From Leucoraja erinacea (lineage: Eukaryota), in assembly GCF_028641065.1 (NCBI RefSeq), contig NC_073387.1, positions 15,748,001 through 15,812,000 on the forward strand: 64,000 bases of DNA, read 5' to 3'. The position numbers and the translations under genes are program-made. Under the pieces are notes generated by a model that was not told where the DNA came from, did no database searches, and saw nothing but the letters and a program-made list of their open reading frames with translations. Each line of letters starts with the position of its first letter. Within the stretch, counting starts at the first letter, position 1. Of this stretch, positions 5,290-32,636 are shown one piece after another.

Positions 5290-5382
5290 CTGCCATCTGC
5301 TGAATTTCATCAGGGTTGCCATAAAGGTGAGATTCGCCTTCTGTTTTTCTTTTTGATCGTGGAGCTTTCTGACTTTGATTGC
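5290..5382 (-). CDS. IgSF receptor exon: cytoplasmic, with Tyr motif HLYGNP
   Basis: Acceptor ctttag|, donor GCAG|gtaatg, 93 bp, phase 1-1, open: GNQSQKAPRSKRKTEGESHLYGNPDEIQQMA. Confidence 0.7.
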
Positions 5383-6172
5383 CTAAAGCTGTTCAGAAAG
5401 AGGACACCATTTAAATTGTTTTCACCTTTTATAAAGTCAAAGAGTCATAGAACCGGGTCCTTTAGCTCAACTAGTCTATACAATCCAAGCTGCCCCATCC
5501 AAGCTAGTCCCGGTTGCCTGCAATTGCCTGCTAGTCCCGGTTGCCTGCAAGTTAATATAAACATCCACTTCAGCTGATTCTCCACATTCTTCACTGTGAT
5601 GGGAGGCAATAAGTCTAATCTTCTTTACTCTTTATTCTCCCGCGGTCGGGGCAGTCGAACCATTCGCAGTCAGGGCGATAGAAGCTCCTGCAGCCGACGA
5701 TTGAAGCCTCCAGGTCAGGGTGGTCGAAGCTCCTGCAGCTTGGAGCTCCCGAAGTCAATCCCTAACCAAGGGACCGTGAGCTCCACGATGTTATATCCGC
5801 AGGCTCCATGGTTGGAGCTCCCAAAGTCAATCCCGCACAGGGACCACCAGCACCTCGATGTTAGGCCACAGTGCAGATGGAGATACGATACAGAAAAAAA
5901 AAAAAAGCATCTTCATCGCGGTAACTGCATCAGATAACTGCAGAAAAGCACCTAATGTCATTAAGCATTCTCCGCATGGCAACACAGGTAGACAGGACAA
6001 TCCACATTGCATAAATAATGTTTTAAAGACCACAAAAGGTCTGAAATCAATTTCTCAATAACATAGGTACAAACCCAAATATATTGTTCTTTTCTCCTTG
6101 TAACAAAGGTAACATTGTCATTGATAATTTGGGGGATCTGTGCTGCATTCAGGATGTCTTCATGTACTTTAC

Positions 6173-6280
6173 CTGTAGGCTTGCGTTTTCTTTGACAGAA
6201 CACCACTGCCAGTATAATGATGAGGAGAACAGCCAGACTCCCGATAATTACAACAATGGTGAATATAATGGTGTAATTCT
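6173..6280 (-). CDS. IgSF receptor exon: transmembrane segment with basic stop-transfer
   Basis: Acceptor attttgacag|, donor ACAG|gtaaag, 108 bp, phase 1-1. NYTIIFTIVVIIGSLAVLLIIILAVVFCQRKRKPT. Confidence 0.85.
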
Positions 6281-6404
6281 CTGTCAAAATAATAAACACA
6301 GAGTTCACATTTGTAGAATAAATGGACATCATTCAATAGCTCCTCCAATGACCAGGCATTAACCACACTGACTAATTTTGATCAGAAGTCTTGAGTTTAA
6401 CTTG

Positions 6405-7438
6405 TGTAAGTTATTGGGGCAAATCCTCCAAAATTATGGAAGAACTCGGATAAGGACATGGATATTTTAAAAAGACAGATTTGCTGGCTGCAACGGAAAA
6501 AACCCCAATCTACAGAAAGATTCAAACCTGACTGGCCTGTGGATTTGGGCATCACACAACTATGCGAATGATGTGGACAGGAAGGGCTGAGACAGAGATA
6601 ATGAGATCATCTTGGATAAACAAAGGAAGGAACCAGCCTCAGCAGACGGTGGTAAACAGGCCAGCCCAAGCTCAATCACCATCTTGGACGACCCATCCAT
6701 CGAGACAATAGGAGCCCATCCAGGCGATGGGATAATGATCAGGCTAAGGGATCATGACATCAGCAAACCCCTTATCATCGGAAGCCTATTGTTCATGCCA
6801 GATCGAAACTGGGAATCATCAAAAGAACCCTTTTATCCAGAGGACCACCTGGGGGTTTCAAAGGAAGCTCAGGTATAAAACAGGAGTCAAGCCAGAACTC
6901 TTTCTCTCTTTCTGCTCTGCTGGTCGGCTCGTGAGCCCAACTATAAGTCTCTCTTTCTGCTCTGCTGGACGGCTCATGAGCCCAACTGTAAGTACCCCAG
7001 TGACCTGGTGAAATTCCCGAAATAGGATAGATGTTGAGAAGATAAAGGGAAAGGGGGGTAAAATTGTGTAAAGTAAGTTTTACGACGTGCCCGATAGTTT
7101 TCCGTCCATAGTCTTAGTTTAAAGCATAAGTTTAGCCACATATTATGTAGTGTTGGTGAGATTCGATTTCTTATTGTTTAATAAAGCCCGTAAATTTTAG
7201 ACTTGCTTTGAGTCCATCTTGGTTTCTGTTTTCCCTCATCAGCACACTGGTCAATTCAACCTTTTATCATATCCCACCATAATTCCGAGGTCTAGAACTA
7301 GGGGAATCCCTTTTGTTGTATTCTCTCTCTTGGAAACCGCTCGAGTGGAGTGGTTGCCGTTTGACCCTCCGACAAGGGAGAGAATAACTCGAGCAGTTGG
7401 GCCCGAAGTGAAATAAAAGGAAACGCAAAACCCCTACA
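6405..7438 (+). mobile_element. Solo LTR (ERV/Gypsy type)
   Basis: Termini TGTA...TACA, 4-bp TSD CTTG (6401-6404 and 7439-7442), TATAAAA near 6875 and AATAAA near 7180. Confidence 0.75.
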
Positions 7439-7532
7439 CTTGTGATCCAGATTAACTGAGACACAAAGAACTGAAGATGCTAGTTTAGCAATAAAAGTGT
7501 TGGAGAAACTCGGCTGGTTAGGCAGGTGACAT

Positions 7533-7990
7533 TTCGGGTCACAGGCCTTTAGTCTGATGGAGGGTAGTGCGTTCGGCCAAACGCACTATGGGAACTTCAC
7601 TCGCCCCCCTGCAGGAACTATACATCAGGAGGTGCAACTCCAGAGCCAACAATATCATGAGAGACCCCTTCCACCCCTGCAACAGACTGTTCCAGCTGCT
7701 ACGGTCAGGCAAATGCCTCCGTTGCCATGCGGTGAGAACGGAGAGGTTGAGAAGGAGTTTATTCCCAGAGGCCATTCAGACTGTAAACGCCTATCTTACC
7801 AGGGACTAACTCTACTGAACGTTTTTCCTTCCATTATTTATTATGTAAAAGAATATGTGTGTTATGATTGTGTTTATAGCTTGTTTGGTTGTTTGTCTTT
7901 TTGCACAAAAGTCCATGAGCATTGCCACTTTCATTTCACTGCACATCTCGTATGTGTATGTGACAAATAAACTTGACTTGACTTGACTTG
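7533..7990 (+). mobile_element. Rex1/Babar-like LINE 3' fragment
   Basis: RSAKRTMGTSLAPLQELYIRRCNSRANNIMRDPFHP; (CTTGA)n tail; same family as 20050-21135. Confidence 0.75.
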
Positions 7991-8839
7991 GGGTGCGGAC
8001 CCAAAACCTCACCTATCCATGTTCTCCAGAGATTCCACCTGACCCGTTGAGTTACTCCAGCACATTACGTCTTTTTTTTCCAGATTAATTGACCTGACTC
8101 AGAAAGATCAGAGAGCCACAACTTGCCTCAGTACCCATCAGTTAGAGACTATAAACATTCACACAAGTTTCTATTTCTTGGTTACAATCAGCTGACTTCC
8201 TCATGCAGGAGATGGGAGCTGATGGTTGGCTGATAAAGTTGCTGATTCAGCTGTGATACTTCCCACTGTACAATGGACAAATGTCTACCATAGTCTGAGC
8301 CAGCAACAATGGTTGAATGAGCAATGCTGAAAACAGAGAGGATATTGACCGTGAACTTCAATCCTCTCTAACCAGGAGCACAAATACTATAAACGTTAGA
8401 AATACTCAACCATTTGAGCAGTACCCATGGAAAGGGAAATAAGTGAGTTCATGTTTTATGATGAAAAAAAGTTGTCAGATTCAAAGAACGGACGTTTGGC
8501 TTGCTCCTCTTTGCACAGTTCCTATCTGTCCTGCTGATTATTATGATAATTCAGATTTTCAACTCCTAAAATTATTTTTGGTCTTCAAGTACTAAAACTG
8601 TACTGTGCATGTAACCATTGCCTACTGATGTCAATGAGGTTGAACGCACTATTATTGCAATCCTAATGAACACATCATCATGTGTTTTTAGTGCAAAATT
8701 GGAGATGGTTGATCCATGCATTAATTCCACACACCAACAAATCTATTCACACACTGATTATTATCTCTGGCCCTCTAAGGACAGCTCAACACACAGTCTG
8801 CAAGTAGACCAAATGATGGAGAGTTGCTGCCTTACAGTG

Positions 8840-9100
8840 AATGCAGTGCTGGAGACCCTGGTTCGATCTAAACTACTGGGTTCTGTCTGTACTTTCTCCC
8901 CGGGACCTGCGTGAGTTTTCTCCAAGATCTTCGGATTCCTCCCACACTACAAAGACGTACAGGTTTGTAGGTTAATTGGCTTGGTAAATGTAAAAATTGT
9001 CCCCAGTGGGTGCAGGATAGTGTTAATATGTGGGGATTGCTGGTTAGTGCAAACCCGGTGGGCCGAAGGGCCTGTTTCCACGCTGTATCTCTAAACTAAA
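8840..9100 (+). mobile_element. SINE copy (elasmobranch tRNA/V-SINE-like)
   Basis: ctgggttcgat...gggacctgcgtgagttttctcc...gggccgaagggcctgtttccacgctgtatctctaaactaaact. Related pieces occur on the opposite strand at about 9840-9975, 10290-10460, 47090-47380 and 62590-62855. Confidence 0.6.
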
Positions 9101-10879
9101 CTGTAAACATGGCTGGTAATCATTGATATTCTTTTTATGGCTGTTCTCTGTCCAGTTATTACAATGGCACACTGAAGAGAGAGTTTAAGGACAAGAGTCA
9201 ATAATGTTCTTTCATCACAACAATGCATCATTTATTCAGTCTGAACAGAATGGATTGTGGATGGATGCTCCCTTCAGTGGAAAGGCTGAGGACAAAAAGT
9301 TATAGGTTTAAAATAAGGGGAAACATTTTAGAATGACTTTAGGAAAATCTTTTTAGGGAACAGGTAGTTGGAGTCTGAAGTGTACTATCTGTATCAGTTG
9401 GGGAGCTGGGTTCTATTGTGGCTTTCCAAAGAGAATTGAATAAATATATAGTGCTGAAAAAGCTACAATCTAATGGCAAAAGGAGAGGGGGTAGAATTAG
9501 CGAGTTGCTCTGGATGAGAGTTAGTGTAGATATGATGGGTAAAATTGCCACCTTATGTGCTACAACCATTTCACAATTCTATGATTGCACGATGTCATTA
9601 TCTGGGAGGAATTAAAGTGTTCCTGTTGGGACATTGATATATTCCACTGTGCTTCACTGACTCTTCATTGATCGATGTGTGGTGGAGATTGTTTCTTTGT
9701 GCCTGGGTGTTTCCAGTAGGGATCAGTGCTTTGCCTTCTGTCAGCATTATACAAAATGTCTTTCACCGAGGCTTGGGGGCCACATGATGGGCAAAGATTA
9801 ATGGATGGGTGGGAATGGGAGAAAAGGGTGTGTTTATTTTAGTTTAGAGATATAGTGCGGAAACAGGCCCTTCGGGTCGCCGAGTCCACACCGACCAGCG
9901 ATTCCCGTGCACTAACACTATCCCACACACACCAGGGACAACATACAATTAAACCAAGCCTATTAACCTACAAACTTCAGTATCAGTATCAGTATATCTT
10001 TATTGTCATTTCCTGAGTACTCACATACCAGAGGAAACAAAATAATGTTGCTCAACCAGTGTCCATTCAGTGTGCAGTACAAATAACAACAAGTAAATAG
10101 AAATAAAAATACATATATCATGAACAAATTAAATTAAACACTCTACTCTCTACTAAACATCAACAGGCGTTCCGATCGACAGCTGCTGCAGTGTGTCCAG
10201 GTTGATTGTTGGTGCGCGATACTTTGGCAGGGGGCTAAGTCCATTTATCAGTCTTATAGCCTGCGGGAAGAAGCTGAGGAGCATCCTGCTAGTTTTGTAC
10301 GTGTTTGGAATTTGGGAGAAAACCAGAAATCCTGGAGAAAACCCATGTAGGTGATGGGATGAACGTACAAACTCCATACAGACAGCATCTGTAGTCAGGA
10401 TTGAACCTGGGTCCCTGGCGCTGTAAGGCAGCAACCCTACTACTGCGCCACCATGGTCAGACAAGGTGAAGACATCAGTATTCCCTCCCTCACGTCTTCT
10501 GTTCTCGCATGGCAGCCTTTGGTGAAGTTATTGTGGATGCTACAAGCACTGTAATGTTTTACGGCACAAAACAGGTGAAAGAAACTTGTACAACTATTTT
10601 TAAGGTGATTTTCACTACTTTTGAGACCTTTAAGGTCCACAGTTTCGGTGTCGTGGCAAAGATCTTCCACCAAGCTGCCCCATGGCCGTCCGAAGGAGGG
10701 GTGCGTTGGGTGTGACCGCACCCCCCTTTTTTACCCACAGAGTAAGAAAATCCCAAGCAAGCAGGAAAGAAAAAAAAAAAAAAAAAAAAAAAAAAAATCG
10801 GAAAAATTTCTGGCTCTGGATAAGGGAGAGACCGCCCTCCCCTCGCTGGGTGGGAGTGGCTGAATCTGAACCCAGTGGC

Positions 10880-11615
10880 TGTAACCCTAACACCAGCGCT
10901 GCAGTGGCGGGGCCCGCTCCCCTTGGGCTGTAACCCCAACACCCCGCCACCCCCGCTGGGCCCAAGCCACCCCCACTGGGCCCAAGCCACCCTTGCAGGG
11001 CCCACACCACCCCTGCTGGGCCCAGGCCACCCCTTCTGGGTCCAAGCCACCCCCCCTGCTGGGCCCATACCACCCCCGTTGGGCCCACGCCACCCCCACA
11101 CTCACCCCCCAATGGGTCCATGCCACCCCTGCTTACCCCCGCAGGGCCCACGCCACCCCAGCTGGGCCCAAGCCACCCTTGCTGGGCCCAAGCCACCCCT
11201 CGCTGGGCCCAAGCCATCTCCGTTGGGGCCCAAGCCACCCCGCTGGGCCCACACCACTCCCCGCTGGGCCCCAGCCACCCCCACTGGGCCCAAGCCACCC
11301 CTGCTGGGCCCATACCACCCTCGTTGGGCCCACGCCACCCCCACTGACCCCCAATGGGTCCATGCCACCCCCTGCTGACCCCCTGCTGGGTCCAAGCCAC
11401 CCCCTGCTGGGCCCAAGCCATCCCCTGCTGGGCCCAAGCCATCCCCTGCTGGGCCCAAGCGACCCCCACTGGGCCCAAGCGACCCCCACTGGGCCCATGC
11501 CCCCCACTGGGCCCAAGCCACCCCCGCTGGGCCCACACCACCCCCGCTGACCCCCACTGGACCCACGCCACCCCAGCTGACCCCCACTGGGCCAACGTGA
11601 ATCCCGTTGGGCCCA
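10880..11615. repeat. GC-rich minisatellite with CTGGGCCCA core (units about 20-30 bp)
   Basis: Dozens of degenerate ctgggccca(a/c)gccacccc units; related array at 35475-35810. Confidence 0.9.
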
Positions 11616-11839
11616 CGCCACCTTCATCTTCGTCGCCCCTGCCAGAAAGAGGGGGGGATGTGGGAGGGGGAGAGAGAGAGGGGGAAGGGAGGGGAGAGAG
11701 AGATGGGGAGGGAAAGGGGATTATCTTTAGTGAGATTGCAAAATTAAGGTAGGTTTTAGAACTATTATATTTTCTCCTCCATATGAATAATTTTAAACAA
11801 TATCAAATAATATCAAAAAGAGTTAAAAGATAGCTTAAT

Positions 11840-14050
11840 CGATGAAGAGCTGAGAAGAGGAATCGGAGCTGCCAAGGAAAGGTACTCTGAGAAGTTGAGG
11901 AGCAAGTTCTCAGCTAGTGACTCTTCTTCAGTTTGGATGGGCAAGCAAGAAATCACCAGCTATTAGAGGAAAGCCCCCCGCTCTTTGGACAATCATCAGC
12001 TGACAAACTACCTGAATTAGTTTTACTGCAGGTTTGAAAATCAGAAACGTAACCCTGGTACCCCCTAGCCACCAAATACAGCCTGCAAAGAATGGACCCT
12101 GTACCCTCTCCTTTCCATTCACCACCTCACACCTGGCAAGACTCCAGTAATGAAAAGGGTGGACCCTTTTCCATCCCCACCAACACTTCACACCCAATTA
12201 CTAACTTTTAATAAGTACCTGCAAAGATGCACTGACCCTGCCTGCTTCAAATTCTCCACTATTGTCCCTGTACCCAAAAGGTAAGGATTACTGGTCTTAA
12301 TGACTACAGGCTTGTCGCACTGACCTCTGTAGTCATGGGGACCGTTGAAAGGCTTGTGCTGGCCATGCTGAAAAACATCACAATCCCTCTGCTGGACCCT
12401 CTGCATTTTGCATATTGGGCCAATAGATCTGTGGATGATGCAGTCAATCTGGGCCTACGCTTCATCCTCCAGCACCTAGACTGCCAGGGGACCTATTTCC
12501 GAGGATTTTGTTTGTTTATTTTAGCTCTGCATTCAACACCATTGTGCCAGAGCTACTACGCTCCAAACTTTCTGAGTTGATTGTGCTTGAACCCCTCTGT
12601 CGGTGGATCACCAGCTTTCTGACTGACAGGATACAGCATGTGAGACGGGAAAGCACATCTCGGACCCACAAACGCTCAGCAAAGGAGCAGCGCAAGATGC
12701 GTACTCTCCCCTCTCCTCACCAATGACTGCACCTCCACAGACACCTGTCAAGCTTCTCAAGTTTGCAGATGACACAACCCTGATTGGACTGATCCAGGAT
12801 GGGGATCTCTGTACTCTTTTCAATTTGACATCTTTCCTATAACATGATGCCCAGAACTGAACACAATATTCTAAATGTGGTCTCACCAACGTCTTATACA
12901 ACTGCAACATGACCTCACAACTTCTATACTCAATACTCTGACTGACGAAGGCCAAAGTGCCAAAGTACGCTTTGACCACTTGATATACCTGCGACACAAC
13001 CTTCAAGGAACCATGCAACCATCAACCATTCCTCTGCCCACCATCTAATTGATCCAGTTCCTGCTGCAATCTTTCACAACCATTTTCACTATATGCAAAA
13101 CCACTCATATCTGTATCATCAGCTAACTTGCTAATCTTGCCCTGTTCTCTGATGTTTCACCGAGTGCTGGAGTAACACAGCGGATCAGGCTGAGTATAGA
13201 GGTTGGGAGGTCATGTTGCAGTTGCATAAGAAGGTAGTGAGGCCACATTCAGAGTATTGTATTCAGTTCTGGGCACCATGTTATAGGAAAGATATCATCA
13301 AACTGGAAAGGGTACAGTGAAGATGTACGAGGATGTTTCCAGGACTAGAGGGCCAGAGCTATAGGGAGAGGTTGAGTAGGCTGGGACTCTATTTCATGGA
13401 GCACACAAGAGGATGAGGAATGATCTAATAGAGATGTAAACACTGTATAAAATCATGATTTGAATAGATATTGTTGTCTTTTGCCCAGAGTAGTTACATC
13501 GAGGCGCAGAGGACGTAAGTTTAAGGTGAACGGTAAAAGATTTAATAGGAATCTGTGGGGTATGTTTTTCACAAAAGGGGTGGTAGGTGTTTGGAACAAG
13601 CTGCCAGAGGAGATAGTTGAGGTGGGAACTATCGCAACATTTAAGAAACAGTTAGACTGGTAGGACAGGTTTGGAGAGATATGGATCAAACGTGGGCAGG
13701 TGGGACTGGTGTAGATGGGACATGCTGGGCCGAAGGGCCTATTTCCACACTGTCTCACACTATGGCTCTATCTATCCTTCCCTCTCAAACACATTTTCCT
13801 GCCTTCTCCCCATTACCTCTGACACCCGTATCAATCAAGAATCTAGCAATCTCCTCCTGAAAAATGTCCATTGACTTGACCTCCACAGCTGTCTGTGGCA
13901 ATGAATTCCACAGTTCACCACCCTTTGACTTAAGAAATTCCTGCTCATCTCCTTCCTAAAGGAATGTCTTTTAATTCCGAGGCTGTGGCTACTGATCCTA
14001 GACGCTCCCACTAGTGGAAACATCCTCTCCACATCCACTCCATCCAGGTT
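11840..14050. mobile_element. Mosaic of Rex1-like RT fragment (+, about 11840-12800) and CR1 3' fragments on both strands
   Basis: STIVPVPK...DYRLVALTSVVM...LDPLHFAY and KFADDTTLIGLI (Rex1-like); [19 protein letters not shown] (CR1). The same mosaic recurs at 41370-43680. Confidence 0.75.
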
Positions 14051-14692
14051 TTTACCGGGCTGGGACAGACTGCAACAGCTTCACACCGCGTCCCAAAGCT
14101 TGTGCCTGTCTTGCATCACCCAAGGCAGCAGAGACATTATAGGAGAGGGCAAGCACCGTAACAAAGTAGCTCACGATGGTTTGGGTAACATTCAGGAATG
14201 TCTATTCATGCCACATCATGAATATTACTGAAGAACGGTCTTGACCCGAAATATAATCTCCATGTATGCTGCATGACACACTGAGTTACTCCAGCACTCT
14301 GCGACATGTCATCTATCCATGTTCTCCAGAGATGCTGCCTAACCCGCTGAGTTACTTCAGCACTCTGTGAAATGTTGCCTATTCATATTCTACGCAGATG
14401 CTGCCTGACCCACTGAGTTACCCCAGCATTTTGTGTCTATTTTCCCTTCACCCATCTGCCCAAGCCCACTCTCCCCCCTCCTTTCTTATATTCCTTTCCA
14501 CCCATAAACCTCTCTCTGCCTTTACATTTCACTCCTCTATCAAATCTACTCTAGTTATCTACATGCATTTTTCATCTTAACTTTTTAGTCATAGAATGAT
14601 GCAGTGTGGAAACAGGCCCTTCAGCCCAACTTGCCCACACAGACCAACATGTCCCATCTAAACTAGTCCCACTCACACGCGTTTGGCCCATA

Positions 14693-15708
14693 TCTATATT
14701 ACTAAAGGTCTGATCTTGACTGCTTTTGTCTCGCTGTACTGTGATTTCCGCGAGAACGCCACGACCTACAGCCGTCATGTTTGGCCACCTCGCTCAGAGC
14801 CCCTCTCCGCCTTCCTGGACCAGAGGATTTTTCCCATCGATGAAAAATCTGAGAGATATGAATTTTTTTTTTTTAATCGCCATTCTCTCTGCTGCCCCTG
14901 CGGGAGGGAGGGGGAGGGACTATAAAACCAGGAAGTGGTGTGCCTCACTCATTCTGCAAGATGGAGGAAGCCAGAGGGTCACGTCTCTCCGAGCTCTGAA
15001 TAACACTGAACACATGTCTACTGAACTGTGAGTGCCCTTAATATGGTTTGAAATTGAAAATATTGTTGGTTTGAAGTGCAAATTGTTGTTTGGGGGGTTT
15101 GGGGTTTGAAGTAAAAAGGCACTGCAAATGGTTGTTTGGGGGGGTTTGGGTTGAAGTAAAAAGGCACTGCAAATTGTTGTTTGGCTAATCTTGACAACTT
15201 CCTGTTTGCACTATATAGATTTTAGATACAATGCTACCACTTACGGCTGTGATTTTTGGCCATCTTAATCAGCCTCCCTCTGCTCATCAGGTGCAGAGGA
15301 TTCTTCCCATCAATGAAAACTAAAAGTGTTATTAGTGTTTAAAAAATGTTGAGAATCTCTCTCCTGTCAATCACGCCATGAAGGCCACATCTTTTCCGGT
15401 GGGAGGGGGAGGGATTATAAAACCCGGAAGTGTGGGTGTTGCTCAGTCTCTGCATGATGGGGGAGGGAGAGGTCACAACTCTGTCTGAGCTGTGAATCAA
15501 CTGAACATACTGAATGTCTATTGAACTGTGAGTATGGTGTTTTGTGTGGCTTTATGGTGGTTTTAAGATGGTTTCATCTTCACCCCCCCCCCCCCCCCCC
15601 CCCCCCACCACTGGCCACCAATATTGGAATTGGTGGAGAGGTGAAATTTTGCGTTGGGGGACCAGCCCTCCCATGTGTACATGGGACCCAACGGGTTCCA
15701 CTTAGTCT
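14693..15708 (+). mobile_element. Non-autonomous Helitron-like element
   Basis: Starts A|TCTATATTACTAAA and ends with a hairpin (gggacccaacgggttcc) followed by acttagtct. Absent from the duplicate block at about 44330. Confidence 0.55.
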
Positions 15709-16432: not shown

Positions 16433-16702
16433 TTTTAAACTGCAGATAATATGGAATGAAAACCTTGGGTGTGCTTTGATGAAACAAAACACATGTCCAG
16501 TTCCTTCTTACTCCATCAACTTTTGCAATAATCAGCTGCAAAAAATTGTCCTCCTGCTTTGTTTGCATGAGATTTTTCTCCTCTACAACTTTGCCTTCAT
16601 CGTTGATCCAAACCAGTCTAATTGGCTCAGTGACATGAGACACAGAGCAGGTCAGTGCAATGTTTCTTCCCTCAGTTACTGCACCAGATGGTTCAGTTGT
16701 GA
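16433..16702 (-). CDS. IgSF receptor exon: domain 8, C2-type Ig with WxC (paralog of D4)
   Basis: Acceptor tttccacag|, donor AAAA|gtaagt, 270 bp. IALTCSVS...RLVWIN...RNWTCVLF. Confidence 0.88.
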
Positions 16703-17531: not shown

Positions 17532-17858
17532 CTGTAACTGTGATTAGTTCAATGGTCACATATTTATTTGATCCCGTGGAACATGTGTAAACTCCAGCAT
17601 CTTCGAACTGCATGGGGACAATCCTCACATGGAGATTCTTGTCATTCACATTTCCCTCTGTGGTTTCCAGACGATTCCCAAAGTAGCTCCTGTTGACATG
17701 GATCAGCTCAGACCTGAGAGTAGACTTCTCTTTATTCTGGAAACGTGATCTCCAAGTCCATTTGGTTTCACTGAGCTGAGGAGAAGCTTCACAAATCAGG
17801 ACGAGTTCGCTGTGACCCGTGACTGAGCGATAAACTGTGTACGTCTTGTTGTGTAAAT
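17532..17858 (-). CDS. IgSF receptor exon: domain 7, V-type Ig (paralog of D3)
   Basis: Hand translation from ctctcttgcag|: DLHNKTYTVYRSVTGHSELVLICEASPQLSETKWTW...FGNRL...LHVRIVPMQFEDAGVYTCSTGSNKYVTIELITVT; donor ACAG|gtagga; 327 bp. Confidence 0.88.
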
Positions 17859-20049
17859 CTGCAAGAGAGGTTCAGGGAACAATAATTAGATTTCCACAGA
17901 TGCTGAGATACAGATGTTCTGTGTTTGCACAGGAACAAACCCCCGGCTCTGGGATATCAGCTGGGAAGCTGGTTCTGGACTCCCCGAACATGGGGGAACA
18001 TTTTTCCTGCATCTAGCCTGTCCAATCCCTTCACAACTTATATGTTTCCCCTCTCTCCTTCTAAATTTCTAATATTATAAGATACCCTCTCTCCTTCTAA
18101 ATTTCAGTGAACATATGCCCAGTCGATCCATTCTTTCATCATACCTCAGTCCCGCCATCTAAGGAATTAATCTGGTGAACTTACTCTGCACACTCTCGAT
18201 AAGAAGAATGTCCTTTCTCAAACTAGGAGACCAAACTGCACACAATACTTCAGGTGCGGTCTCACCAGGGCCCTGTCCAACTGCAGTAGGATCTCTATTC
18301 TCCTCTATTCAAATCATCTTGCTATGAAGGCCAAAATACCATTTGCTTTCTTCACTGTCTACTGTACCTTCATGCTTACTTTGTAATTATGCTGCTAAAT
18401 CTCACCCCGTTAGTCAACGCAACGTTAGTCAATTATGCTCCTAAATCTCACCCCTGGATCAACTAAACTTCTTTATTCTCAATCACAAACAAAATTCCTA
18501 TACAATACCTAACCAACACTGTGGGTCCGATCCTTGTCTCTACGCATCCAAGCACTTCAGCCTCATACAAATTGACACCTCCAGATGGTCAGCACAGTCT
18601 CAAGTGTTACCCGAGAAGATTGGCCCCGATCCATGTGGTGTCCCCTCTTATATACAAAATATGTATACACAATGTAATGGCTGCTGGAAGCCCAGCTGTT
18701 CACAGAACTCTTTAATATTCTGCCGAATAAAATGTGGACTGTTGTCTGACCTAAGTCGAATAGGGATACCAAATCTAGGGACAATTTCTCTCATTAACAC
18801 CTTGACAACAGTAGCCGCTACTTTATCAAGTGTTGGATAGGCCTCGATCCACCGGCTGAATACATCGACTATTATGAGTACATATCTGTATCCCTGGCAT
18901 TTCTCCAACTCTATATAATCCATTTGTAAAGTTTCAAAAGGACCCATGGGCAAAGGTGTCTTTCCACCTCCACACCCTACTCCTTTTCCAGGATTGTACT
19001 TCTGGCAAATCAGGCAATTGCTACACACTTTGTGGACCAATATTTGTAATTTCGGATGCCATCAAGTAGCTCAGAGCATGTCTCCAATGGCTGTTGTGCC
19101 GCAGTGAGTTGCAAAATGTATGACTCTTCAACCCAAACAGTAAGGGGGTCTGTCATGCACGTCTGCCCTGCCGGAGCAGTTCATATTCCCTGTTCCAATG
19201 ACCCAGCTGGTTACAATTAAAGCAAGCACCTGATGCTACTATTTTATCAACTTTAAAATATCTCTTCGGGGAAATATGGGGCTGTCTATTATCTTTCCTT
19301 GATGTGGGAGTATCCTTCATTAACTTCTTCCTTGCTCAATTTCTAATAATTAATGTGATGGCATGTTTAATTTCTTTATCGTGATACATTATTTTGATTG
19401 GTCCAGGGATAAGGGTCAGGCAATCTTGTCCATTGACTTTCGACAGACTGGCTAATCAGGACTGTGAAAATGGATTGGTCTGAGAAAAAGGTGTCTGTCT
19501 TCTCTGTACCTGATTTCCTGGCCAGCTCACTCTTTGCTCTCTCTGATCACTTTGGTCTCTGAAATCTCTGATCCCTCTGCTCGAAAATTTCTCTAATCTC
19601 AAAAGTCTCCACTGAGCCCTTCCTTCACTTTATCACACAGTCGGACATGCCCAACTCCAGTCTCCTGTCCCACTTCAAGTATAGCATTGGTCTGGTTCTA
19701 GTATGTTATTTCTTCTCCAATTATGTCTCGGGAAAATTGGTTCTAAAGCAGGCATCATATCATCTCATATCTATCTATCCTATCTATATACTTTTAAAAC
19801 TTTGTGTGTATGTGTGTGTGCACGTGTGGGTGTGTGTGTGTGTGTCATTTTGCGTTTGAAACGTATCACCTCGAAAACCAGAAGCAAAAATGCGGAGATG
19901 TTTACATATTTCGATACGGATTTAACATGATTTCAGAAATCCACTCCTCTCTAACTTTGGTCAATTATTTCCCCAGATTTTGAATAAAATTGTTCATAAA
20001 ACTCACGTTTTAAAAAATAATCTCTCTCACTCTTTGAGAGGCTGGTCAA

Positions 20050-22464: not shown

Positions 22465-24690
22465 CGGTAGTGGGGAAACTGCTAGAGTCAGTTATTAAAG
22501 ATGGGATAGCAGCACATTTGGAAAGTAGTGAAATCATTGGACAAAGTCAGCATGGATTTACGAAAGGTAAATCATGTCTGACGAATCTTATAAAATTTTT
22601 CGAGGATGTAACTAGTAGCGTGGATAGGGGAGAACCAGTGGATGTGGTGTATCTGGACTTCCAGAAGGCTTTCGACAAGGTCTCACATAAGAGGTTAGTA
22701 TACAAACTTAAAGCACAAGGCATTGGGGGTTCAGTATTGATGTGGATAGAGAACTGGCTGGCAAACAGGAAGCAAAGAGTAGGAGTAAACGGGTCCTTTT
22801 CACAATGGCAGGCAGTGACTAGTGGGGTACCGCAAGGCTCAGTGCTGGGACCACAGCTATTTACAATATATATTAATGATCTGGACGAGGGAATTGAAGG
22901 CAATATCTCCAAGTTTGCGGATGACACTAAGCTGGGGGGCAGTGTTAGCTGTGAGGAGGATGCTAGGAGACTGCAAGGTGACTTGGATAGGCTGGGTGAG
23001 TGGGCAAATGTTTGGCAGATGCAGTATAATGTGGATAAATGTGAGGTTATCCATTTTGGTGGCAAAAACGGGAAAGCAGACTATTATCTAAATGGTGGCC
23101 GATTGGGAAAGGGGGAGATGCAGCGAGACCTGGGTGTCATGGTACACCAGTCATTGAAGGTAGGCATGCAGGTGCAGCAGGCAGTAAAGAAAGCGAATGG
23201 TATGTTAGCTTTTATTGCAAAGTATAGGAGCGGGTAGGTTCTACTGCAGTTGTACAGGGTCTTGGTGAGACCACACCTGGAGTATTGCGTACAGTTTTGG
23301 TCTCCAAATCTGAGGAAGGACATTATTGCCATAGAGGGAGTGCAGAGACGGTTCACCAGACTGATTCCTGGGATGTCAGGACTGTCTTATGAAGAAAGAC
23401 TGGATAGACTTGGTTTATACTCTCTAGAATTTAGGAGATTGAGAGAGGGATCTTATAGAAACTTACAAAATTCTTAAGGGGTTGGACAGGCTAGATGCAG
23501 GAAGATTGTTCCCGATGTTAGGGAAGTCCAGGACAAGGGGTCACAGCTTAAGGATAAGGGGGAAACGTACGACATACGCTCATTCACTTTAAAACATTAC
23601 ATAGATTATACTATTCAAAAACTAAATTAAATAAAATCTTCCCTAATGTTTCACCAATCTGTGATAAATGCCTGTGTCAAGAAGCTACCATAGCGCACTC
23701 TTTTGTTTTTTGTATAAAAATCAAAAAATTCTGGTATGAAATATTTGATATTTTTTCAAAATTGATCAAAATAAAACTGGTACCAAAACCAGAATGGATT
23801 ATCTTCGGAATATAGGAAGGTAACCCTGAATTAAACGTGTTTCAGAAGAATTTATTTAATTACGGGCTAATAATGGGAAAAAAGCTTATACTTAAATTCT
23901 GGAAAAATGCGCCGACACCAACAATAAAAATGTGGATATCAAATATGTTTGAAACATTACATCTGGAAGAGATGAGATTCCTCCTAGCCGGTAAAGCAGA
24001 CCAATTCCAAAAGACGTGGTCTATGTTTCTGGACCTATTACAAGTATGAGGTGCAATAGTCAGGACCTGGTAACGGGAGGTAAAACAACAAAAACAGACT
24101 TGGTTGGTAGTCCCCTTTCTGCGGAGTTTAATGTTATAATAGAGCGATTGTTTCTATTTTCTCTTTCTTTCTTTTCTAGGGTCTATTTTCTCACTTTACT
24201 TCCTTCTCTAACTTCTTTCCTAAGGGGCTTTCTTTTCCCAACACTCTTGCACTTCACGACTCTCTTGCACTTTCTTTACTTTCCTTACTTCTACCTTTTT
24301 CTTAAAGCTCAAAAAAAAATGAAGCGGTACAAAAAATGTATTAAGATATATGTGTTATGTAGGATTGTAATTTACCGTACTTCTAATAAAAATAAAATTA
24401 AAAAAAAAAAAGGATAAGGGGGAAATCCTTAAAAACCGAGATGAGAAGAACTTTTTTTCACACAGAGATTGGTGAATCTCTGGAACTCTCTGCCACAGAG
24501 GGTAGTTGAGGCCAGTTCATTGGCTATATATAAGAGGGAGTTAGATGTGGCCCTTGTGGCTAAGGGGATCAGGAGGTATGGAGAGAAGGCATGTACGGGA
24601 TACTGAGTTGGATGATCAGCCATGATCATAATGAATGGCGGTGCTGACTCGAAGGGCCGAATGGCTTACTCCTGCACCTAATTTCTATGT
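22465..24690 (+). mobile_element. CR1 LINE, 5'-truncated, interrupted by an L1 fragment
   Basis: ORF 22470-23237 with QHGFTKGKSCLTNL, YLDFQKAFDKV, GVPQGSVLGP, KFADDTKL; ends in a ttctatgtttctat tail near 24690. Confidence 0.9.
23566..24410 (+). mobile_element. L1-like LINE 3' fragment with poly(A) and TSD
   Basis: C-terminal ORF2 remnant (CDKC...HSFVFC...W...LILKFWK), AATAAA and poly(A), TSD AGGATAAGGGGGAAA (23551-23565 and 24411-24425). Confidence 0.85.
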
Positions 24691-26503: not shown

Positions 26504-26776
26504 CCTGATCCACTTCAACATTGGTGTCTCCAGTTAGAACAATGGAGCCATTTTCCTGCACTTCCCACGTGTACAGATTGGGACTTCCTGCTCCGACGTG
26601 TTGGACCATCAGATAGACGGTGTTATTCAGATGGATCTGATCAGTGTTGTTCCTCCTGTTTGCCTGAAATAAGCCTCTTGGTTTCCAGTGAAGACTGACG
26701 GTATCTGGGTGTCTGGAGATGGTACAGCTGAGGATGATGTCGCTGCCTATTACTGGCCTCGGTGAGTCTGCCTCAA
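26504..26776 (-). CDS. IgSF receptor exon: domain 6, C2-type Ig (paralog of D2; F-strand Cys replaced by Trp)
   Basis: Acceptor gtttccacag|, donor CAGG|gtgagt, 273 bp. IILSCTIS...SLHWKP...NLYTWEVQ. Confidence 0.85.
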
Positions 26777-27516
26777 CTGTGGAAACAAACACATGGTTCA
26801 GTTCCCCACCAGCTTTCTGAACTGCTGCGGGCAGAATTGTCTTTTTCCTGCAAACAGACAGTCGGCCGAATGTTGAGCTGCCACGCTGAGTGATGTCATC
26901 AACACTTCCAGGTAGTGACCACCTGTCCCCCTCGTCACCCACATCAAGAATTCCAGGTAGGGATTTTTTTAGTACAGGAGAAACACAGAACTGCAGATGC
27001 TGGTTAATATATAAATGGACATAAAATGCAGGAGTAATTCAGCGGATCAAGCAGCAACTACAGAGGACATAGATAGGTGACGTTTCAGGTCGAGACCCTT
27101 CTTCAGACTGATTATTTTTCTTCGATGTCTTTTACTAAGGGGTGATCATATTGGGGTGAATCATGAGAGGCATATCTATAGTAAATGCACATGGCCTTTT
27201 TTCCAGGGTTGCTGAATCAAATACTAGATATGTTTTTGGTGAAGGGGACAGATGTGATATACCCCATAATATGAGGGGCAAGTTTTGACAAAGAGGGTGG
27301 TACATGAACATACTTTTTGGAAAGATCGAGCAGAGGAAGTGATTGATGCAGGTACAGCAAAATTTAAAATACATTTAAACAGATATATGGAAAAAAAGGT
27401 TTAACGGATAAGGCCCAAAGAGGGCAAATTGGACGTTTAAATGGGTAGTTTGTCAGTGTGGATGAATTGGGCCAAAGGGCCTGTTTCAGTGCTGTTGGAC
27501 CCTATGACTCTATTAC

Positions 27517-27861
27517 CTTTGATCCCAAATAGTTCCCACTGTCTCAGGGTTTTCCCAGCGGGCTCTGTTTGAGTCCAGGTGAATAGTCCTGCAAGTTCAA
27601 AGGTGGGCTTCCTGATCCTCAGATTAAGGGTACCCCAGTCCACACGCATGCTCTGGGAAATGCCTGGTATTTGATTGTACTCATCACTCCATTGTACAGC
27701 CCACCGCTGATCTTCTCTGTGAAAAGTGGCCAATTGCTTTGTGGTTTGTTGCCCTGAGTGTGGCCTCCATTCCAAGTCAATGGGGCCATTTCCAGGACTG
27801 TCTGGTCCTTTCATTACAAAGTTGCCTTCCTGGTGGAAAAAGTAAATAGAATCTCCACATC
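27517..27861 (-). CDS. IgSF receptor exon: domain 5, V-like without canonical cysteines (paralog of D1)
   Basis: Acceptor ttcttttcttttccaacag|, donor AAAG|gtaata, 345 bp. GCGDSIYFFHQEGNFVMKGPD...LEWRPHS...LNLRIRKPTFELAGLFTWTQTEP...WELFGIK. Confidence 0.82.
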
Positions 27862-28565
27862 CTGTTGGAAAAGAAAAGAATCTTTATTAAATAGTACATT
27901 ATAATTCATAACCTGGAACAGCATAGAAACAGGTACTCTGTAGTAATCTGTCAACGCAGACCAGTGGGTATCCTTCCACGCAGACACAAGAAAATGCAGA
28001 TTATGGAATGTTGATCAAATGCTGGAGTGCTGGAGAAAATCAGTCAGGCAGAATCTGTGGAGGGAATGGATCGATGATATTTCGTGTCACGCCCCTTTTT
28101 CAGACATGGAATGGGAGAGTGAAAGCTGGGGAAGGGAAGTAGGCATGAGGCAAAGCATGATGAGTGATAGGTGGATACAGGTGGGAAATGGTGATGAGTA
28201 GATGGATGGAGATAATGACAAACGCGAGGGGTGAAATGGAAACCGAAGGTTGTCAGATCCATAAAAGAGGGAAGGATATTGGTGGAAGTGGAGCAAGAAC
28301 ATGAAAGCAAAATTGTGCAATTGGAAGGGGGATGTGGAAAGAGGAAGGGGGAGGGAATAGGGTAGTTTGGTGGTGAGATAAATGTGTGCACAATGAAGTG
28401 GGGGGAGAAATGGGGTTCGGGATGTTTTATTTGAAATTTGAGAATTAATTGGTCATTATAGAGTTAGACCACTCACAAACCAGAAGACCATATTCCACTT
28501 TCAAATTTCAGGGCATCAAAACTCAATCATGATGAAGTATGAAGAGCAAACCCTGAGTCACTTAC

Positions 28566-28826
28566 CACGTGGCTCCTGATAATACGGGACAAAAATCCGG
28601 GGCAGGTCTTGATGAAACAAACCACATATCCAGTTCCCTCTGCCTCTCTCAACTTTCTGAATAACCAAACTATATGATTTTTCTTTCCCAGTCAGCGTAT
28701 TTTCTCCAACACTTTTGCCATCGCCATTGATCCAAACCAGTCTTATTGATTCATTGATGTGAGACACAGAGCAGGTCAGTGTAACGTTGTCTCCCTCAGT
28801 CATTGCATCAGACGGTTCAGCTGTGA
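28566..28826 (-). CDS. IgSF receptor exon: domain 4, C2-type Ig with WxC
   Basis: Acceptor tttccacag|, donor CGTG|gtaagt, 261 bp. VTLTCSVS...RLVWIN...GNWICGLF. Confidence 0.88.
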
Positions 28827-28904
28827 CTGTGGAAACAAGCAGGTTGTTTAGATTTTAAACATTGAGTTCATCAGTAAAAACACTGCCAACATTATGTCTC
28901 CTAC

Positions 28905-29243
28905 CTTTTACTGTGATTAGATCAATGGTTGGAAGTTGAAGTGCTTCCATTGAACATGTGTAAAGTCCGGCATCTTGAAAAAAAATCGGAACAATCCTTA
29001 CATTGAAATCCATGCCATTGAAGTGTTTCACTGAGGTCATCAATCGATTCCGGAAGTAGGTCCGGTTGACATTGATGGGCTGAGAGAGTCCGGCAGATGC
29101 TATTACTTTCTGCTGTTGTTGAAGGCGACGAGATGTCCAGGTCCACCGAGCAGTGGAATAGTGATACGGCCAATAACAAACGAGGTGAAGTTCATTGTGA
29201 TCTGTGCTGGAGCGGTAAAGCGTGTACCTCCCATTATATAAAT
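28905..29243 (-). CDS. IgSF receptor exon: domain 3, V-type Ig
   Basis: Hand translation from gatacag|: YLYNGRYTLYRSSTDHNELHLVCYWPYHYSTARWTW...FRNRL...FNVRIVPIFFQDAGLYTCSMEALQLPTIDLITVK; donor AAAG|gtagga; 339 bp; DAGxYxC motif. Confidence 0.88.
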
Positions 29244-30139
29244 CTGTATCAGTGAGTTAGAAGATAACTCCTTTCAGTATTAGTTATTCTCATCCGCGTT
29301 TCAAATGTAACATATTCCATAAATGCCGCACCAAAACTCATGAGATCTTTATAAAATAAAATGTCGTGTACAGCAGTAAATTGCAGTGAAGTTTGGATAT
29401 TCGACTCTACATTTCAACATTAGGTTCGCCCCCACACCCGACTGTCCGGGGATCTCCCGGGATGGAATGAAACCTCCCGGAGACTCCCGAGAGCGGCCCG
29501 GGAAGTGAATCTCTCTGTCAGTCTGCAGGAGGTGGTGCAGGTTCAGGCTGCGGAGAGAAGCAGCGCAGTGGACGTCTGCGCGGGGCCCGATCCGGACAGG
29601 TTGGCAGGTCAAGTAGGTCGGGTCTTCCCGTCCCATCAGTCCCACCATCCCTCTCCCATTCACACCCATTGATTCCCTGTTCTTCCCTGTCCCGGGTCCT
29701 GCTCCCAGCTCAATGCTGATCTGAAGCCCGAGTCTGCTGCAGCTGGAATCGCTTCAAACAGCAGCAGGACTCGGAGAGAAGGGTCAGTGAGGGGAGAGGG
29801 GACGGATTGTTGTTCAGTGCTGATGTGTGCACCGGGATCCCCAGTGTGAGTGTGAGCAGCAAGTGCTGGTGGTTGTCATGGTGACTACACTTTCTATCTG
29901 ACACTTTGACGTGAGTCCTGTATCAATATCTCAGTCTCAGATACTGGAGCATTGATGGCAAGTTAAAGTGACAAAATACTTTACTGAACAATAGTTACAG
30001 AAATACATCCCCCTCCTGTGCTGTGTGTCTGTCACACAGAGACAAGCAGGCAGCTGCCCCACAGAGAGACTTTCTGGAAACTTCTCCCTGATCATTGCAG
30101 CATTTTATACACGAGAGCAGTTGGTCACTATCCACAGTT

Positions 30140-30485
30140 CTTCACTTGTTCCCGATGTTGGAGAAGTCCAGAACAAGGGGTCACAGTTTAAGGATAAAGG
30201 GGAAATCTTTTAGGACCGAGATGAGGAAAACTTTTTTCACACAGAGAGTGGTGAATCTCTGGAATTCTCTGCCGCAGAAGGTAGTGGAGGCCAGTTCATT
30301 AGCTATATTTAAGAGGGAGTTAGATGTGGCCCTTGTGGCTAAAGGGATCAGGGGGTATGGAGAGAAGGCAGGAACAGGATACTGAGTTGGATGATCAGCC
30401 ATGATCATATTGAATGGCGGTGCAGGCTCGAAGGGCCGAATGGCCTACTCCTGCACCTATTTTCTATGTTTCTATATTTCTATGT
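30140..30485 (+). mobile_element. CR1 3' end fragment
   Basis: LFPMLEKSRTRGHSLRIKGKSFRTEMRKTFFTQRVVNLWNSLP and ttctatgtttctat tail. Similar pieces at 50250-50840 (+) and 56740-56905 (-). Confidence 0.85.
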
Positions 30486-30569
30486 TTCACAGGGCGCACG
30501 CACAATATTACAAGAAGCACCGTGATACAAGTGTTTACTTGATATGTAATGGGAGATGTTTACACTTAC

Positions 30570-30839
30570 ACTTGTTTACAGTAAAATCTCCACTACTGGT
30601 GTGAACGATGTTTCCGTTTTCCTGCACATCACACACATACAACTTCCCATCCTCCACTGTAACATGTCGGATCATCAGATAGACCGTGTTCTTCAGGCGG
30701 ATCTGATCAGTGTTGCTCCTGTTCTTCTGGGATGAGTCCATTGGTCTCCATTGAAGACTGACTGTATCTGAGAGTCTGGAGATGGTGCAGCTGAGTGTGA
30801 TGTCACTGCCCAGCAGAGGGCGCTGTGGACTTGCCTCAA
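30570..30839 (-). CDS. IgSF receptor exon: domain 2, C2-type Ig
   Basis: Acceptor tttttcacag|, donor AAGT|gtaagt, 270 bp. ITLSCTIS...SLQWRP...KLYVCDVQ shows the C-W-YxC Ig pattern. Confidence 0.88.
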
Positions 30840-31500
30840 CTGTGAAAAACAGATGAATGAGATTCAGAGTGAGTAGTGGTGTGTGCAGTCCAATGACTGG
30901 GCTCAAGGCTGACAGCCTGGCTGAAAGTCAGGACAACTTCTCCCCCAGTGCTCTCAGACCCCTGACATGCGTGGCTGAACATATTGACGCAGCGAGATGC
31001 CGACAGTTCACCGTGGGACTGCTGGTGGAACCGGCAACATTCAGGCTTTGTTTTATTTTAAAATGCATCTATTTCCACTCCTAAATTGATCTGATTGCTC
31101 TCAAGAGGTGAAGTCTATGGCTGAGCCCAAGTTCCACAGACGATGAACTTCCATCGACAAGGTAACATTAAGCAGCAATGTCACCCCGGAGCCACGGCAC
31201 GGAGACATTGGTTTCATACCACCTTGCCGCGATCACCTTACCGTGTGCCGGCGAGAAGACCATGGTATTCGCTGCGGGGTGGATTCATTGATTTGCTGTT
31301 CCCAGTGAAGTCATCAAACTATTTTCACTCCTGCTGATCATTTCAGTATCAATGAACATAAACACTTCCCCAGTTGTTTTACTGGGAGATTCTCTTTTCA
31401 CCGTGTGGAAGAAGTCTCACATTTCCCGCCATCTCTCATCATTATAGGCGACAATACAGAGATAAATTAAGCATTATTGATCCTTATCGCACCCACTCAC

Positions 31501-31839
31501 CTTTGGTCCCAAATATTTCATATTGTTTCAGGATTTGCTTTCTCGGTTCTGTTTGAGCCAAAGTGAAAAATCCCGCCCATTTAAATATGGGTTTATAAAT
31601 TGTCAGATCAAGTGTATGGTAATTGACAAACGTCTCCGGGTACAAGTCCACATTCTCGCCAGCGGACTTCTCTTTGATCCAATTGTCCCTCGTTCTTCTA
31701 AAAGTCGTCAATTTTCCGATATCCTTCTCTGAGTGTGGTTTCCATTCCCAGACAACAACAGAGTCTTTCTCAGGATTGTCCGGTCCGTTTAAAACAATCT
31801 TGACTCCGTTATCCAAGAAATACGTTTGACTTCTATTTC
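31501..31839 (-). CDS. IgSF receptor exon: domain 1, V-like without canonical cysteines
   Basis: Acceptor tttgtaacag|, donor AAAG|gtgagt, 339 bp, phase 1-1, open. RNRSQTYFLDNGVKIVLNGPD...VWEWKPHS...LDLTIYKPIFKWAGFFTLAQTEP...YEIFGTK; homologous to the exon at 27517-27861. Confidence 0.8.
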
Positions 31840-32539
31840 CTGTTACAAATACGAACAATGAAGAATTAACATTTATAACACATTTTCCCCACCCCATATC
31901 TGTAATCATTAATTTTGAACAATGCAATTCCAGACAGTTGTGATCATCCTTGGAAACCCCAGCGAGCAAGATACGGTTTGTGAAGAGATGTCTGTCTGGA
32001 ATAACCTGGCCTGATCCAGGGATATTTCATCACATGAGAGGAGCGAGTGGGAGGGGGTCGGAGGTGGGGATAGGGGTTTGTGGTGGGGCAGTGGATGAGC
32101 TCCACCCGGTTTTGAAGGAACTTTGCAGGAGCGCGAAGTGAAGACATTGCGTGTGGTTCTCGGTCTGCGACTGGATCGATAAGTTGAGGGCAGTTCCACC
32201 AGCCTACACTGTGGTGGGAAGGTGTTGGGGAGGATGGTGTTGACAACAGTGTTAAAGGCTACAGAGGCTGAGTGGGATGGGGAGGGAGAGTTTAACTCTG
32301 CAACAAGCTCACAGGAGGCAATTTCTGACTTTGATAAGGACCGTGTCGGTGCAGGAGGAGAGTGAGTTGATGGGAGGGGCTTAAAAATAGACTTCCAGCA
32401 AGGGATGGCATGGATTTGTGAGGCAGCAGCACATTCAGGATGTGGAGAGGAAAGCGAGATTGACAATGGGGTGTGGCTTTACACGGATAATGATAACATA
32501 ATGCATGGTGATTGTGACCGGTGAAGAGAAAGCACTTAC

Positions 32540-32636
32540 TCTGAGTTGAAACAGGTCGCAGCAGGAAAACAAAGTAACCGAACATCAAACCAATTGGCAA
32601 ACTGCCGCAGAGAAACCTCGGCCTCATTTTGTGCAT
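32540..32636 (-). CDS. IgSF receptor exon: signal peptide (MHKMRPRFLCGSLPIGLMFGYFVFLLRPVSTQ)
   Basis: ATG at 32636 (second in-frame ATG at 32627), hydrophobic core, donor CAGA|gtaagt in phase 1 matching the next exon. Confidence 0.8.

Follow-up and report, generated by a model that had tools for sequence, protein, structure and literature searches.

The minus strand of a 64,000-nucleotide stretch of the Leucoraja erinacea genome (NCBI RefSeq assembly GCF_028641065.1, contig NC_073387.1, positions 15,748,001 to 15,812,000; hereafter the window) carries a receptor gene, LOC129701493 (RefSeq proteins XP_055498692 and XP_055498693; working label P0089), whose predicted product has eight immunoglobulin (Ig) domains arranged as a tandemly repeated four-domain cassette. 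In the reading that we favour, and that we consider rather probable, this gene encodes a type I protein with a signal peptide, two V-C2-V-C2 cassettes, an uncharged membrane span and a tail bearing one YxN motif and two immunoreceptor tyrosine-based inhibitory motifs (ITIMs), and belongs, on the inhibitory side, to a family of immune-type receptors that evolve fast, lie in clusters and are built on the fold plan of CD4 and LAG-3. We read it as an inhibitory paired receptor because of the clustering of its family, the variable domain number, the fast-evolving membrane-distal domain and the split between ITIM-bearing members and members with a charged transmembrane segment. LOC129701493 is thereby a variant on known kinds (a CD4/LAG-3-like fold and paired ITIM receptors) and should not be taken for an isolated curiosity or for a system of a new category.

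We looked for open stretches bearing Ig hallmarks and set their borders by AG/GT sites and reading frame; this gave 11 exons in the window, from the ATG at 32636 to the end of the last in-window exon at 5290, with AG/GT borders at every exon and all joins in phase 1. Exon 1 (32540-32636) holds the start codon and a hydrophobic leader (the predicted signal peptide) and ends at a phase 1 GTAAGT donor; this leader is 97% identical to that of the LOC129701495 model, a paralog. The eight Ig exons, D1 to D8, are 339, 270, 339, 261, 345, 273, 327 and 270 nt long, all multiples of three and all of phase 1-1. D1 (31501-31839) is V-set-like, without a Cys pair and with a WEWKPHS motif; D2 (30570-30839; Pfam ig/Ig_3) is a C2-type domain with YxC in strand F; D3 (28905-29243; Pfam V-set, E 2e-4) is a V-set domain with a Cys pair; and D4 (28566-28826; Pfam ig) is a C2-type domain with WxC (NWIC). 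The second cassette repeats the series with D5 (27517-27861), a copy of D1; D6 (26504-26776), a copy of D2 in which the second Cys is replaced by Trp (YTW); D7 (17532-17858; Pfam V-set, E 6e-7), a copy of D3; and D8 (16433-16702), a copy of D4 with WxC (NWTC). Pfam recognises an Ig or V-set domain in D2-D4 and D6-D8 and matches neither D1 nor D5; single-domain sequence searches of Pfam and the Protein Data Bank (PDB) returned generic Ig matches only, with MXRA8 and CD226 as the best for D3 and none for D1/D5. The transmembrane exon (6173-6280; AG/GT borders, phase 1, hydropathy 3.4) encodes an uncharged span and, after it, basic stop-transfer residues; the YxN motif (HLYGNP) is in the first cytoplasmic exon (5290-5388), which ends in phase 1.

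The spliced in-window product comprises 909 codons with zero stops, in agreement with the first-pass annotation, which had proposed that, within identical limits (32636-5290), one exon for the leader, eight for Ig domains and one each for the membrane span and the cytoplasmic part are joined in phase 1. Its 11 exons stand; its end of the gene at 5290 does not. The first cytoplasmic exon ends in phase 1, and the gene therefore continues past this point. Remaining tail exons were looked for inside the 64-kb window and none is there; three further tail exons, followed by a stop, lie 76-2876 bases beyond window coordinate 1 (L001 37891-40691), as read from a stretch of CM054017.1 (locus L001) that extends past the window and agrees with it base for base over 37,814 bases. 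This overlap places the window at CM054017.1:15,748,001-15,812,000. The three exons encode AEYMSV, IHYGSI and VIYAQI, and with them the full predicted product reaches 986 residues, with a tail of ~117 residues.

Two of these tail motifs, IHYGSI and VIYAQI, are canonical ITIMs of the form (I/V/L/S)xYxx(I/V/L), and the arrangement of a YxN followed by both of them recurs in most of the eight- and four-domain relatives, from sharks to sturgeon. Other relatives are of an activating type, short-tailed and with a K or R inside the membrane span (GYLxVKL or R-containing spans); K-type spans occur in P0004, P0007, P0062, P0084, P0088, P0101, P0121 and P0038, and R-type spans in the Mobula proteins P0056, P0059 and P0060. 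In the skate, LOC129701492, LOC129701493, LOC129701495 and LOC129701496 all lie within ~0.3 Mb of CM054017.1. ITIM members, basic-span short-tail siblings and a clustered multigene family, three features of the paired-receptor class, are thus all found here; the first-pass annotation had included neither the ITIM tail nor the activating-type siblings nor the extension past the window. One cluster member departs from the plan: the model of LOC129701496 (P0067, locus L002) has eight domains and ends soon after D8 without a membrane span, and WxC in its D8 has a His where the Trp would be; this paralog may be secreted or in decay.

A possible mode of action can be sketched; we infer its signalling steps throughout, as well as the kind of cell and the ligand. 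The membrane-distal V domain or domains would bind a ligand, upon which Src-family kinases would phosphorylate the ITIM tyrosines; phosphatases of the SHP type would then be recruited, with Grb2 at the YxN, and activation of the cell would be damped. The second cassette would provide either a longer rod or a second binding site.

The cassette duplication appears to be ancient. D1/D5, D2/D6, D3/D7 and D4/D8 had been described as pairwise homologous but clearly diverged, and their identities (38%, 56%, 49% and 56%, respectively) bear this out. A chance or assembly artefact was considered and ruled out: at 38-56% identity the copies differ far too much, and this architecture is seen again in ~40 proteins from 20 species. 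In a maximum likelihood tree of 65 cassettes, with support given by the Shimodaira-Hasegawa-like approximate likelihood ratio test (SH-aLRT), the elasmobranch cassettes form two clades, one of the D1-4 type (SH-aLRT 96) and one of the D5-8 type (SH-aLRT 89), with one half of LOC129701493 in each, and both Callorhinchus cassettes pair together. Each clade holds sharks as well as rays; judged from this tree, the duplication is thus older than the shark/ray split, itself an event of hundreds of millions of years ago, and the old duplication proposed in the first-pass annotation is upheld. The tree is matched by a derived character: in 40 shark and ray domains of the D6 type, and in 0 of the D2 type, Trp stands in place of the second Cys. 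D6 of LOC129701493 retains the first Ig cysteine and has YTW at the position of the second. Since the change is common to these 40 shark and ray domains, D6 has been without a disulfide, and with an unpaired buried Cys, since before that split.

We then considered the fold. An AlphaFold model of one cassette (D5'-D8, residues 1-390 of XP_055498692), built on an alignment of 108 cassettes, has a mean predicted local distance difference test (pLDDT) score of 84 and a predicted TM-score (pTM) of 0.82. One strand, at residues 288-303, crosses the D7/D8 border, and strands 89-95 and 98-102 lie at the D5/D6 border; the continuity of V strand G into C2 strand A that characterises CD4 and LAG-3 is thus present in the predicted model. 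In a Foldseek search of this model against 350,542 PDB chains, LAG-3 took ranks 1, 2 and 4 (7tzg_D, E 4.5e-14; 8dgg_A), pIgR rank 3 and four-domain CD4 rank 5; the top 50 are mostly CD4 or LAG-3, with CD4 filling most of them. D1D2 of CD4 superposes on the cassette model with a TM-score of 0.67-0.70 normalised to CD4. A separate model of D1 (pLDDT 87) is a V-set fold without a disulfide, and its best PDB matches are 2B4/CD244, Nav beta4 and MPZ, which are disulfide-less or adhesion-type V domains.

Sequence profiles gave a similar picture, with a caveat. The family profile finds LAG-3 (2e-11) and CD4 (7e-10) near the top of the PDB sequences, and its V-end and C2 region, including WxC, aligns to both halves of LAG-3. 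When the D1D2-type half was aligned to the D3D4-type half by hhalign, the two matched in register (probability 98%, E 4e-13) and cross pairs were much weaker; the cassette itself is therefore an older V-C2 duplication, and LOC129701493 holds this doubled cassette twice. A V-C2-V-C2 ectodomain derived from a V-C2 duplication has been postulated for CD4 and LAG-3 (PMC10768021). The WxC of the D4-type domain is also conserved (W in 103 and C in 106 of the 108 cassettes). However, titin, pIgR and NCAM match the LAG-3 and CD4 scores in the profile search, and homology to CD4/LAG-3 beyond the shared fold is for this reason unproven.

The first-pass annotation had taken the ectodomain to follow the CD4/LAG-3 plan and the gene to be a double-length member of that structural group. 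The PDB fold matches, the D4-type WxC and the nested V-C2 duplication sustain the plan; membership of the CD4/LAG-3 family proper does not hold up, given a D2/D6 without WxC and different tail motifs. Across the 108 cassettes the D2-type domain has YxC in 68, YxW in 40 and WxC in none, so that the strand F WxC is not shared by D2 and D4, and neither the Cx(C/H) motif of CD4 nor the (F/Y)xxL(D/E) motif of LAG-3 occurs in the tail of LOC129701493 (HLYGNP, AEYMSV, IHYGSI, VIYAQI). One could still argue for a true third, doubled CD4/LAG-3 paralog that would bind MHC class II as LAG-3 does: LAG-3 and CD4 are the best PDB folds across all four domains, the D4-type WxC aligns with that of LAG-3, the half-to-half alignment and the strand across the V/C2 border are as expected, and the tail is inhibitory, as in LAG-3. 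Set against this are the YxC/YxW of the D2-type domain, sequence scores for CD4/LAG-3 that are no better than those of titin or pIgR, and the presence of single-copy CD4 and LAG-3 genes in sharks (PMC10768021), whereas the skate family is multi-copy and clustered. The window and the flanking sequence covered hold only family members and retroelements. We consider such a paralog quite improbable; the CD4/LAG-3 structural plan is probably shared through distant kinship.

A second candidate for closer kinship is the G6F/G6F-like group of thrombocyte receptors, of which the family would be an expanded and doubled cartilaginous-fish counterpart. This comparison was made by description only. In G6F-like (G6fL) there are four Ig-like domains and one membrane span, together with a conserved Grb2 site of the YxN type and an ITAM, the immunoreceptor tyrosine-based activation motif (PMC3528668). 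Four Ig domains per cassette, a membrane span and a YxN in the tail (HLYGNP in LOC129701493) are all found in our family, the YxN being kept elsewhere as YSN or YAN, and the four-domain relatives of sturgeon, paddlefish and bichir end in YENx. The ITAM of G6fL has no equivalent: the tail of LOC129701493 lacks a Yxx(L/I) x6-12 Yxx(L/I) arrangement, and its tyrosine motifs, two of them ITIMs, are spaced by ~20-40 residues and conform to the ITIM consensus. Word-indexed protein searches, aimed at named relatives from teleosts (G6F-like, CD4, LAG-3), used a sturgeon member and a profile of 14 family sequences; all that came back were close unnamed relatives and weak 'CD22-like' matches. An origin as a G6F-like counterpart strikes us as no less improbable than membership of CD4/LAG-3.

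Selection was assessed as the ratio of nonsynonymous to synonymous divergence (dN/dS, by NG86). Between the two cassettes of LOC129701493 it is 0.37-0.64, with dS near saturation, and this comparison supports the earlier claim that the copies have stayed open and under selection. Relative to LOC129701492, dN/dS is 0.28 in D1 and 0.30 in D3 (each p < 1e-5), and relative to LOC129701495, the nearest paralog, it is ~0.4 in D6 and D7. Overall there is long-term constraint, and the membrane-distal domain is the fastest evolving. The divergence from LOC129701495 is also uneven from exon to exon: synonymous divergence is ~0.015 in D2 and D5 (window 30570-30839 and 27517-27861 vs. 11934-12197 and 14531-14872 of locus L003) and 0.13-0.18 in D1, D3, D4, D6 and D7, and D8 of LOC129701493 is closer to D4 of LOC129701495 than to its D8. 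Such a patchwork of exons suggests that gene conversion or exon shuffling has taken place among cluster members.

Alongside the equal profile scores of titin, pIgR and NCAM, several observations weigh against our reading. In D1, D3 and D4, dN/dS relative to LOC129701495 is 0.6-0.8, not different from 1, and in D1 it reaches 1.3 relative to LOC129701496 (0.36-0.68 in the other domains); such values fit diversifying selection and, equally, relaxed constraint. The function of the ITIMs and the YxN is read from the motifs alone and is thus a predicted one. Finally, the RefSeq protein begins at an internal ATG (27814) inside D5, without a signal peptide and D1-D4, and no gene is called over the leader and D1-D4. 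From that ATG on, the RefSeq proteins and our model agree: XP_055498692 and XP_055498693 are 100% identical to our D5, D7, D8 and first cytoplasmic exon (residues 1-99 of XP_055498692 in D5 and 425-458 in the cytoplasmic exon), XP_055498692 also matches the transmembrane exon, and its first 458 residues, including D6 and the transmembrane segment, are unchanged within the spliced model.

The annotation is either truncated or a true shorter transcript. Were it the latter, only D5-D8 with the transmembrane segment and tail would form a membrane protein, and D1-D4 would either be a relic in decay or make a secreted four-domain product of their own by read-through of the D4 donor. The RefSeq start and the lack of a called gene upstream are what this account would predict; read-through at the D4 donor would meet a stop after 2 codons, with an AATAAA ~130 bases downstream; and the dN/dS of D1, D3 and D4 against the nearest paralog is compatible with decay. 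However, a start in mid-D5 would leave a receptor of type I without a signal peptide and with a truncated first domain, which is implausible, whereas an intact leader and four open Ig exons, with intact splice sites and matching phase, lie 0.7-4.8 kb upstream of the RefSeq start. The 704-base D4-D5 intron was found to contain neither a transmembrane exon nor a leader exon, and D2 and D4 are 83-90% identical to their paralogs, with no disruptions. Moreover, D4 is joined to D5 at the same junction in the gene models of LOC129701495 and LOC129701496, in an Amblyraja fragment and in the ~40 proteins from 20 species, and D4 would be spliced to D5 in LOC129701493 itself as well. We accordingly hold a separate fate for D1-D4 to be unlikely, and the RefSeq model of LOC129701493 is probably 5'-truncated, lacking the signal peptide and the first four and a half domains. 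Two short family fragments, P0012 and P0025, were considered as transcript-derived contigs and rejected, both being Amblyraja genome models.

Returning to the eight-domain receptor, we asked how widespread its architecture is. When 1.84 billion representative proteins were searched with a D1/D5 profile, 39 matched; of these, the ones that were looked up by name are nearly all 'uncharacterized' and come from cartilaginous and basal ray-finned fishes. A search with a 974-residue Mobula relative returned 62 proteins. Both searches, combined with a domain count, give ~40 predicted proteins with at least two cassettes, belonging to 20 species of sharks and rays; the usual form, common in elasmobranchs, has ~900-1030 residues and eight domains. 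Longer forms exist as well: 12 domains in Heptranchias, a 1710-residue form in Scyliorhinus with a partial cassette followed by three full ones, and 16 or more domains among database entries. Four-domain relatives occur in elasmobranchs, Callorhinchus, sturgeons, paddlefish, Polypterus and Amia, and multi-cassette relatives in eel. The family is found in sharks, rays, chimaeras, sturgeons, bichir, bowfin, eel and a loach (Triplophysa). A nurse-shark entry of 2013 named 'obscurin-like protein' (GenBank AGQ17915.1, UniProt V9NJF3) has the same eight-domain architecture.

That entry and another name found on family members, 'vascular cell adhesion protein 1-like', could point to a structural or adhesion molecule in place of an immune signalling receptor; long Ig rods are typical of adhesion molecules, and profile scores are high for titin and NCAM. 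These names, however, are automatic best-hit labels, and paired ITIMs, charged-span short-tail siblings, clustering, copy-number variation and a fast distal domain are hallmarks of paired immune receptors, so we rate an adhesion role as the most improbable of the alternatives weighed here. The statement in the first-pass annotation that no eight-domain form had been described needs to be divided in two. It is correct for the literature searched, in which we found no paper on the family under shark CD4/LAG-3, G6F-like, the nurse-shark 'obscurin-like' protein or elasmobranch paired ITIM receptors; it is incorrect for the databases, in which eight-domain forms are common and forms of 12 and of 16 or more domains exist. 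The eight-domain forms are thus new to the literature searched and not to databases, and LOC129701493 is one member of a large unnamed family.

The remainder of the window contains mobile elements and repeats; no other family or cellular gene was found in the 64 kb beyond the receptor. At 36348-40550 on the plus strand, two open reading frames (ORFs; 686 and 684 aa) with reverse transcriptase, RNase H, integrase zinc-binding and integrase core domains form a nearly intact Ty3/gypsy-type retrotransposon. The 8.6-kb D6-D7 intron contains an RVT_1 ORF (22470-23237, plus strand, E 2e-27) and an rve integrase-core fragment (18651-19040, minus strand, E 7e-18), and owes its length to retroelement insertions. 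Within the intron after the first cytoplasmic exon, a 283-aa ORF (3407-4258, plus strand) with a tyrosine-recombinase ('phage integrase') domain (E 8e-8) is probably part of an element of the DIRS or Crypton type. In the 10-kb intron between D8 and the transmembrane exon, a 20-base unit is repeated in tandem ~30 times (10946-11549); this G+C-rich array produces long, spurious Gly/Pro/Trp-rich ORFs on both strands. Several ORFs of the long interspersed nuclear element (LINE) type are spread over 52819-62110, with weak RVT_1 matches at 59482-60069 and 60332-62107.

How CD4 and LAG-3 arose has yet to be settled, and we know of no close relatives of the two apart from G6F-like. The family described here brings to this question a four-domain plan, a nested V-C2 duplication and a WxC like those of CD4/LAG-3, in cartilaginous and basal ray-finned fishes, in a group of genes that resembles the classical families of paired immune receptors in its behaviour and in which the entire cassette is the unit that multiplies. 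We put forward, as a tentative and on balance doubtful idea, that the family is a third ancient branch of the CD4/LAG-3 (perhaps G6F) lineage, lost in tetrapods, which has kept an ancestral paired activating/inhibitory state and uses the cassette as its repeat unit (4, 8, 12 and 16 or more domains). If this were true, and if the ligands were like molecules of the major histocompatibility complex (MHC), the family would show MHC co-receptors as they were before CD4 and LAG-3 specialised. For comparative immunologists the analysis supplies a concrete set of genes in which to study ligands (MHC-like or other) and expression, and it flags a probable annotation error in the RefSeq protein of LOC129701493.

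Among known systems, the nearest in architecture are AGQ17915.1 and the ~40 RefSeq 'uncharacterized protein' models, which belong to the same family and for which we found no published characterisation; AGQ17915.1 shares the Cys-to-Trp change in D6 with LOC129701493 and differs in its short tail without ITIMs. By description, G6fL of teleosts and G6F resemble the skate gene in having four Ig-like domains, as in each cassette, a single span and a tail YxN (PMC3528668), and differ from it in having an ITAM where it has ITIMs and in lacking the doubled ectodomain. LAG-3 shares with it a V-C2-V-C2 ectodomain from an old V-C2 duplication, a WxC in the membrane-proximal C2 domain and an inhibitory tail, and is its best fold match. 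LAG-3, however, has four domains and not eight, its first V domain has an extra loop that the skate D1-type domain, itself without a disulfide, does not have, and the D2-type domain of the skate gene carries YxC/YxW; in addition, the skate tail presents canonical ITIMs and a YxN over several exons where LAG-3 has a single-exon (F/Y)xxL(D/E) motif, and LAG-3 is a single gene beside CD4, in contrast to a clustered multi-copy family. CD4 is similar in its four-domain rod plan, in the strand predicted to cross the V/C2 border and in having one V domain without a disulfide (D3 in mammalian CD4); the skate tail, by contrast, lacks the LCK-binding Cx(C/H) motif and would be inhibitory and not activating, the cassette is doubled and the paralogs are many. 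Paired Ig-type families, namely KIR/LILR of mammals and NITR/LITR of bony fish, are alike in being clustered, with ITIM members, basic-span short-tail members, variable domain number and a fast distal domain; compared by description, however, none of them uses a CD4/LAG-3-like V-C2-V-C2 cassette as its repeat unit.

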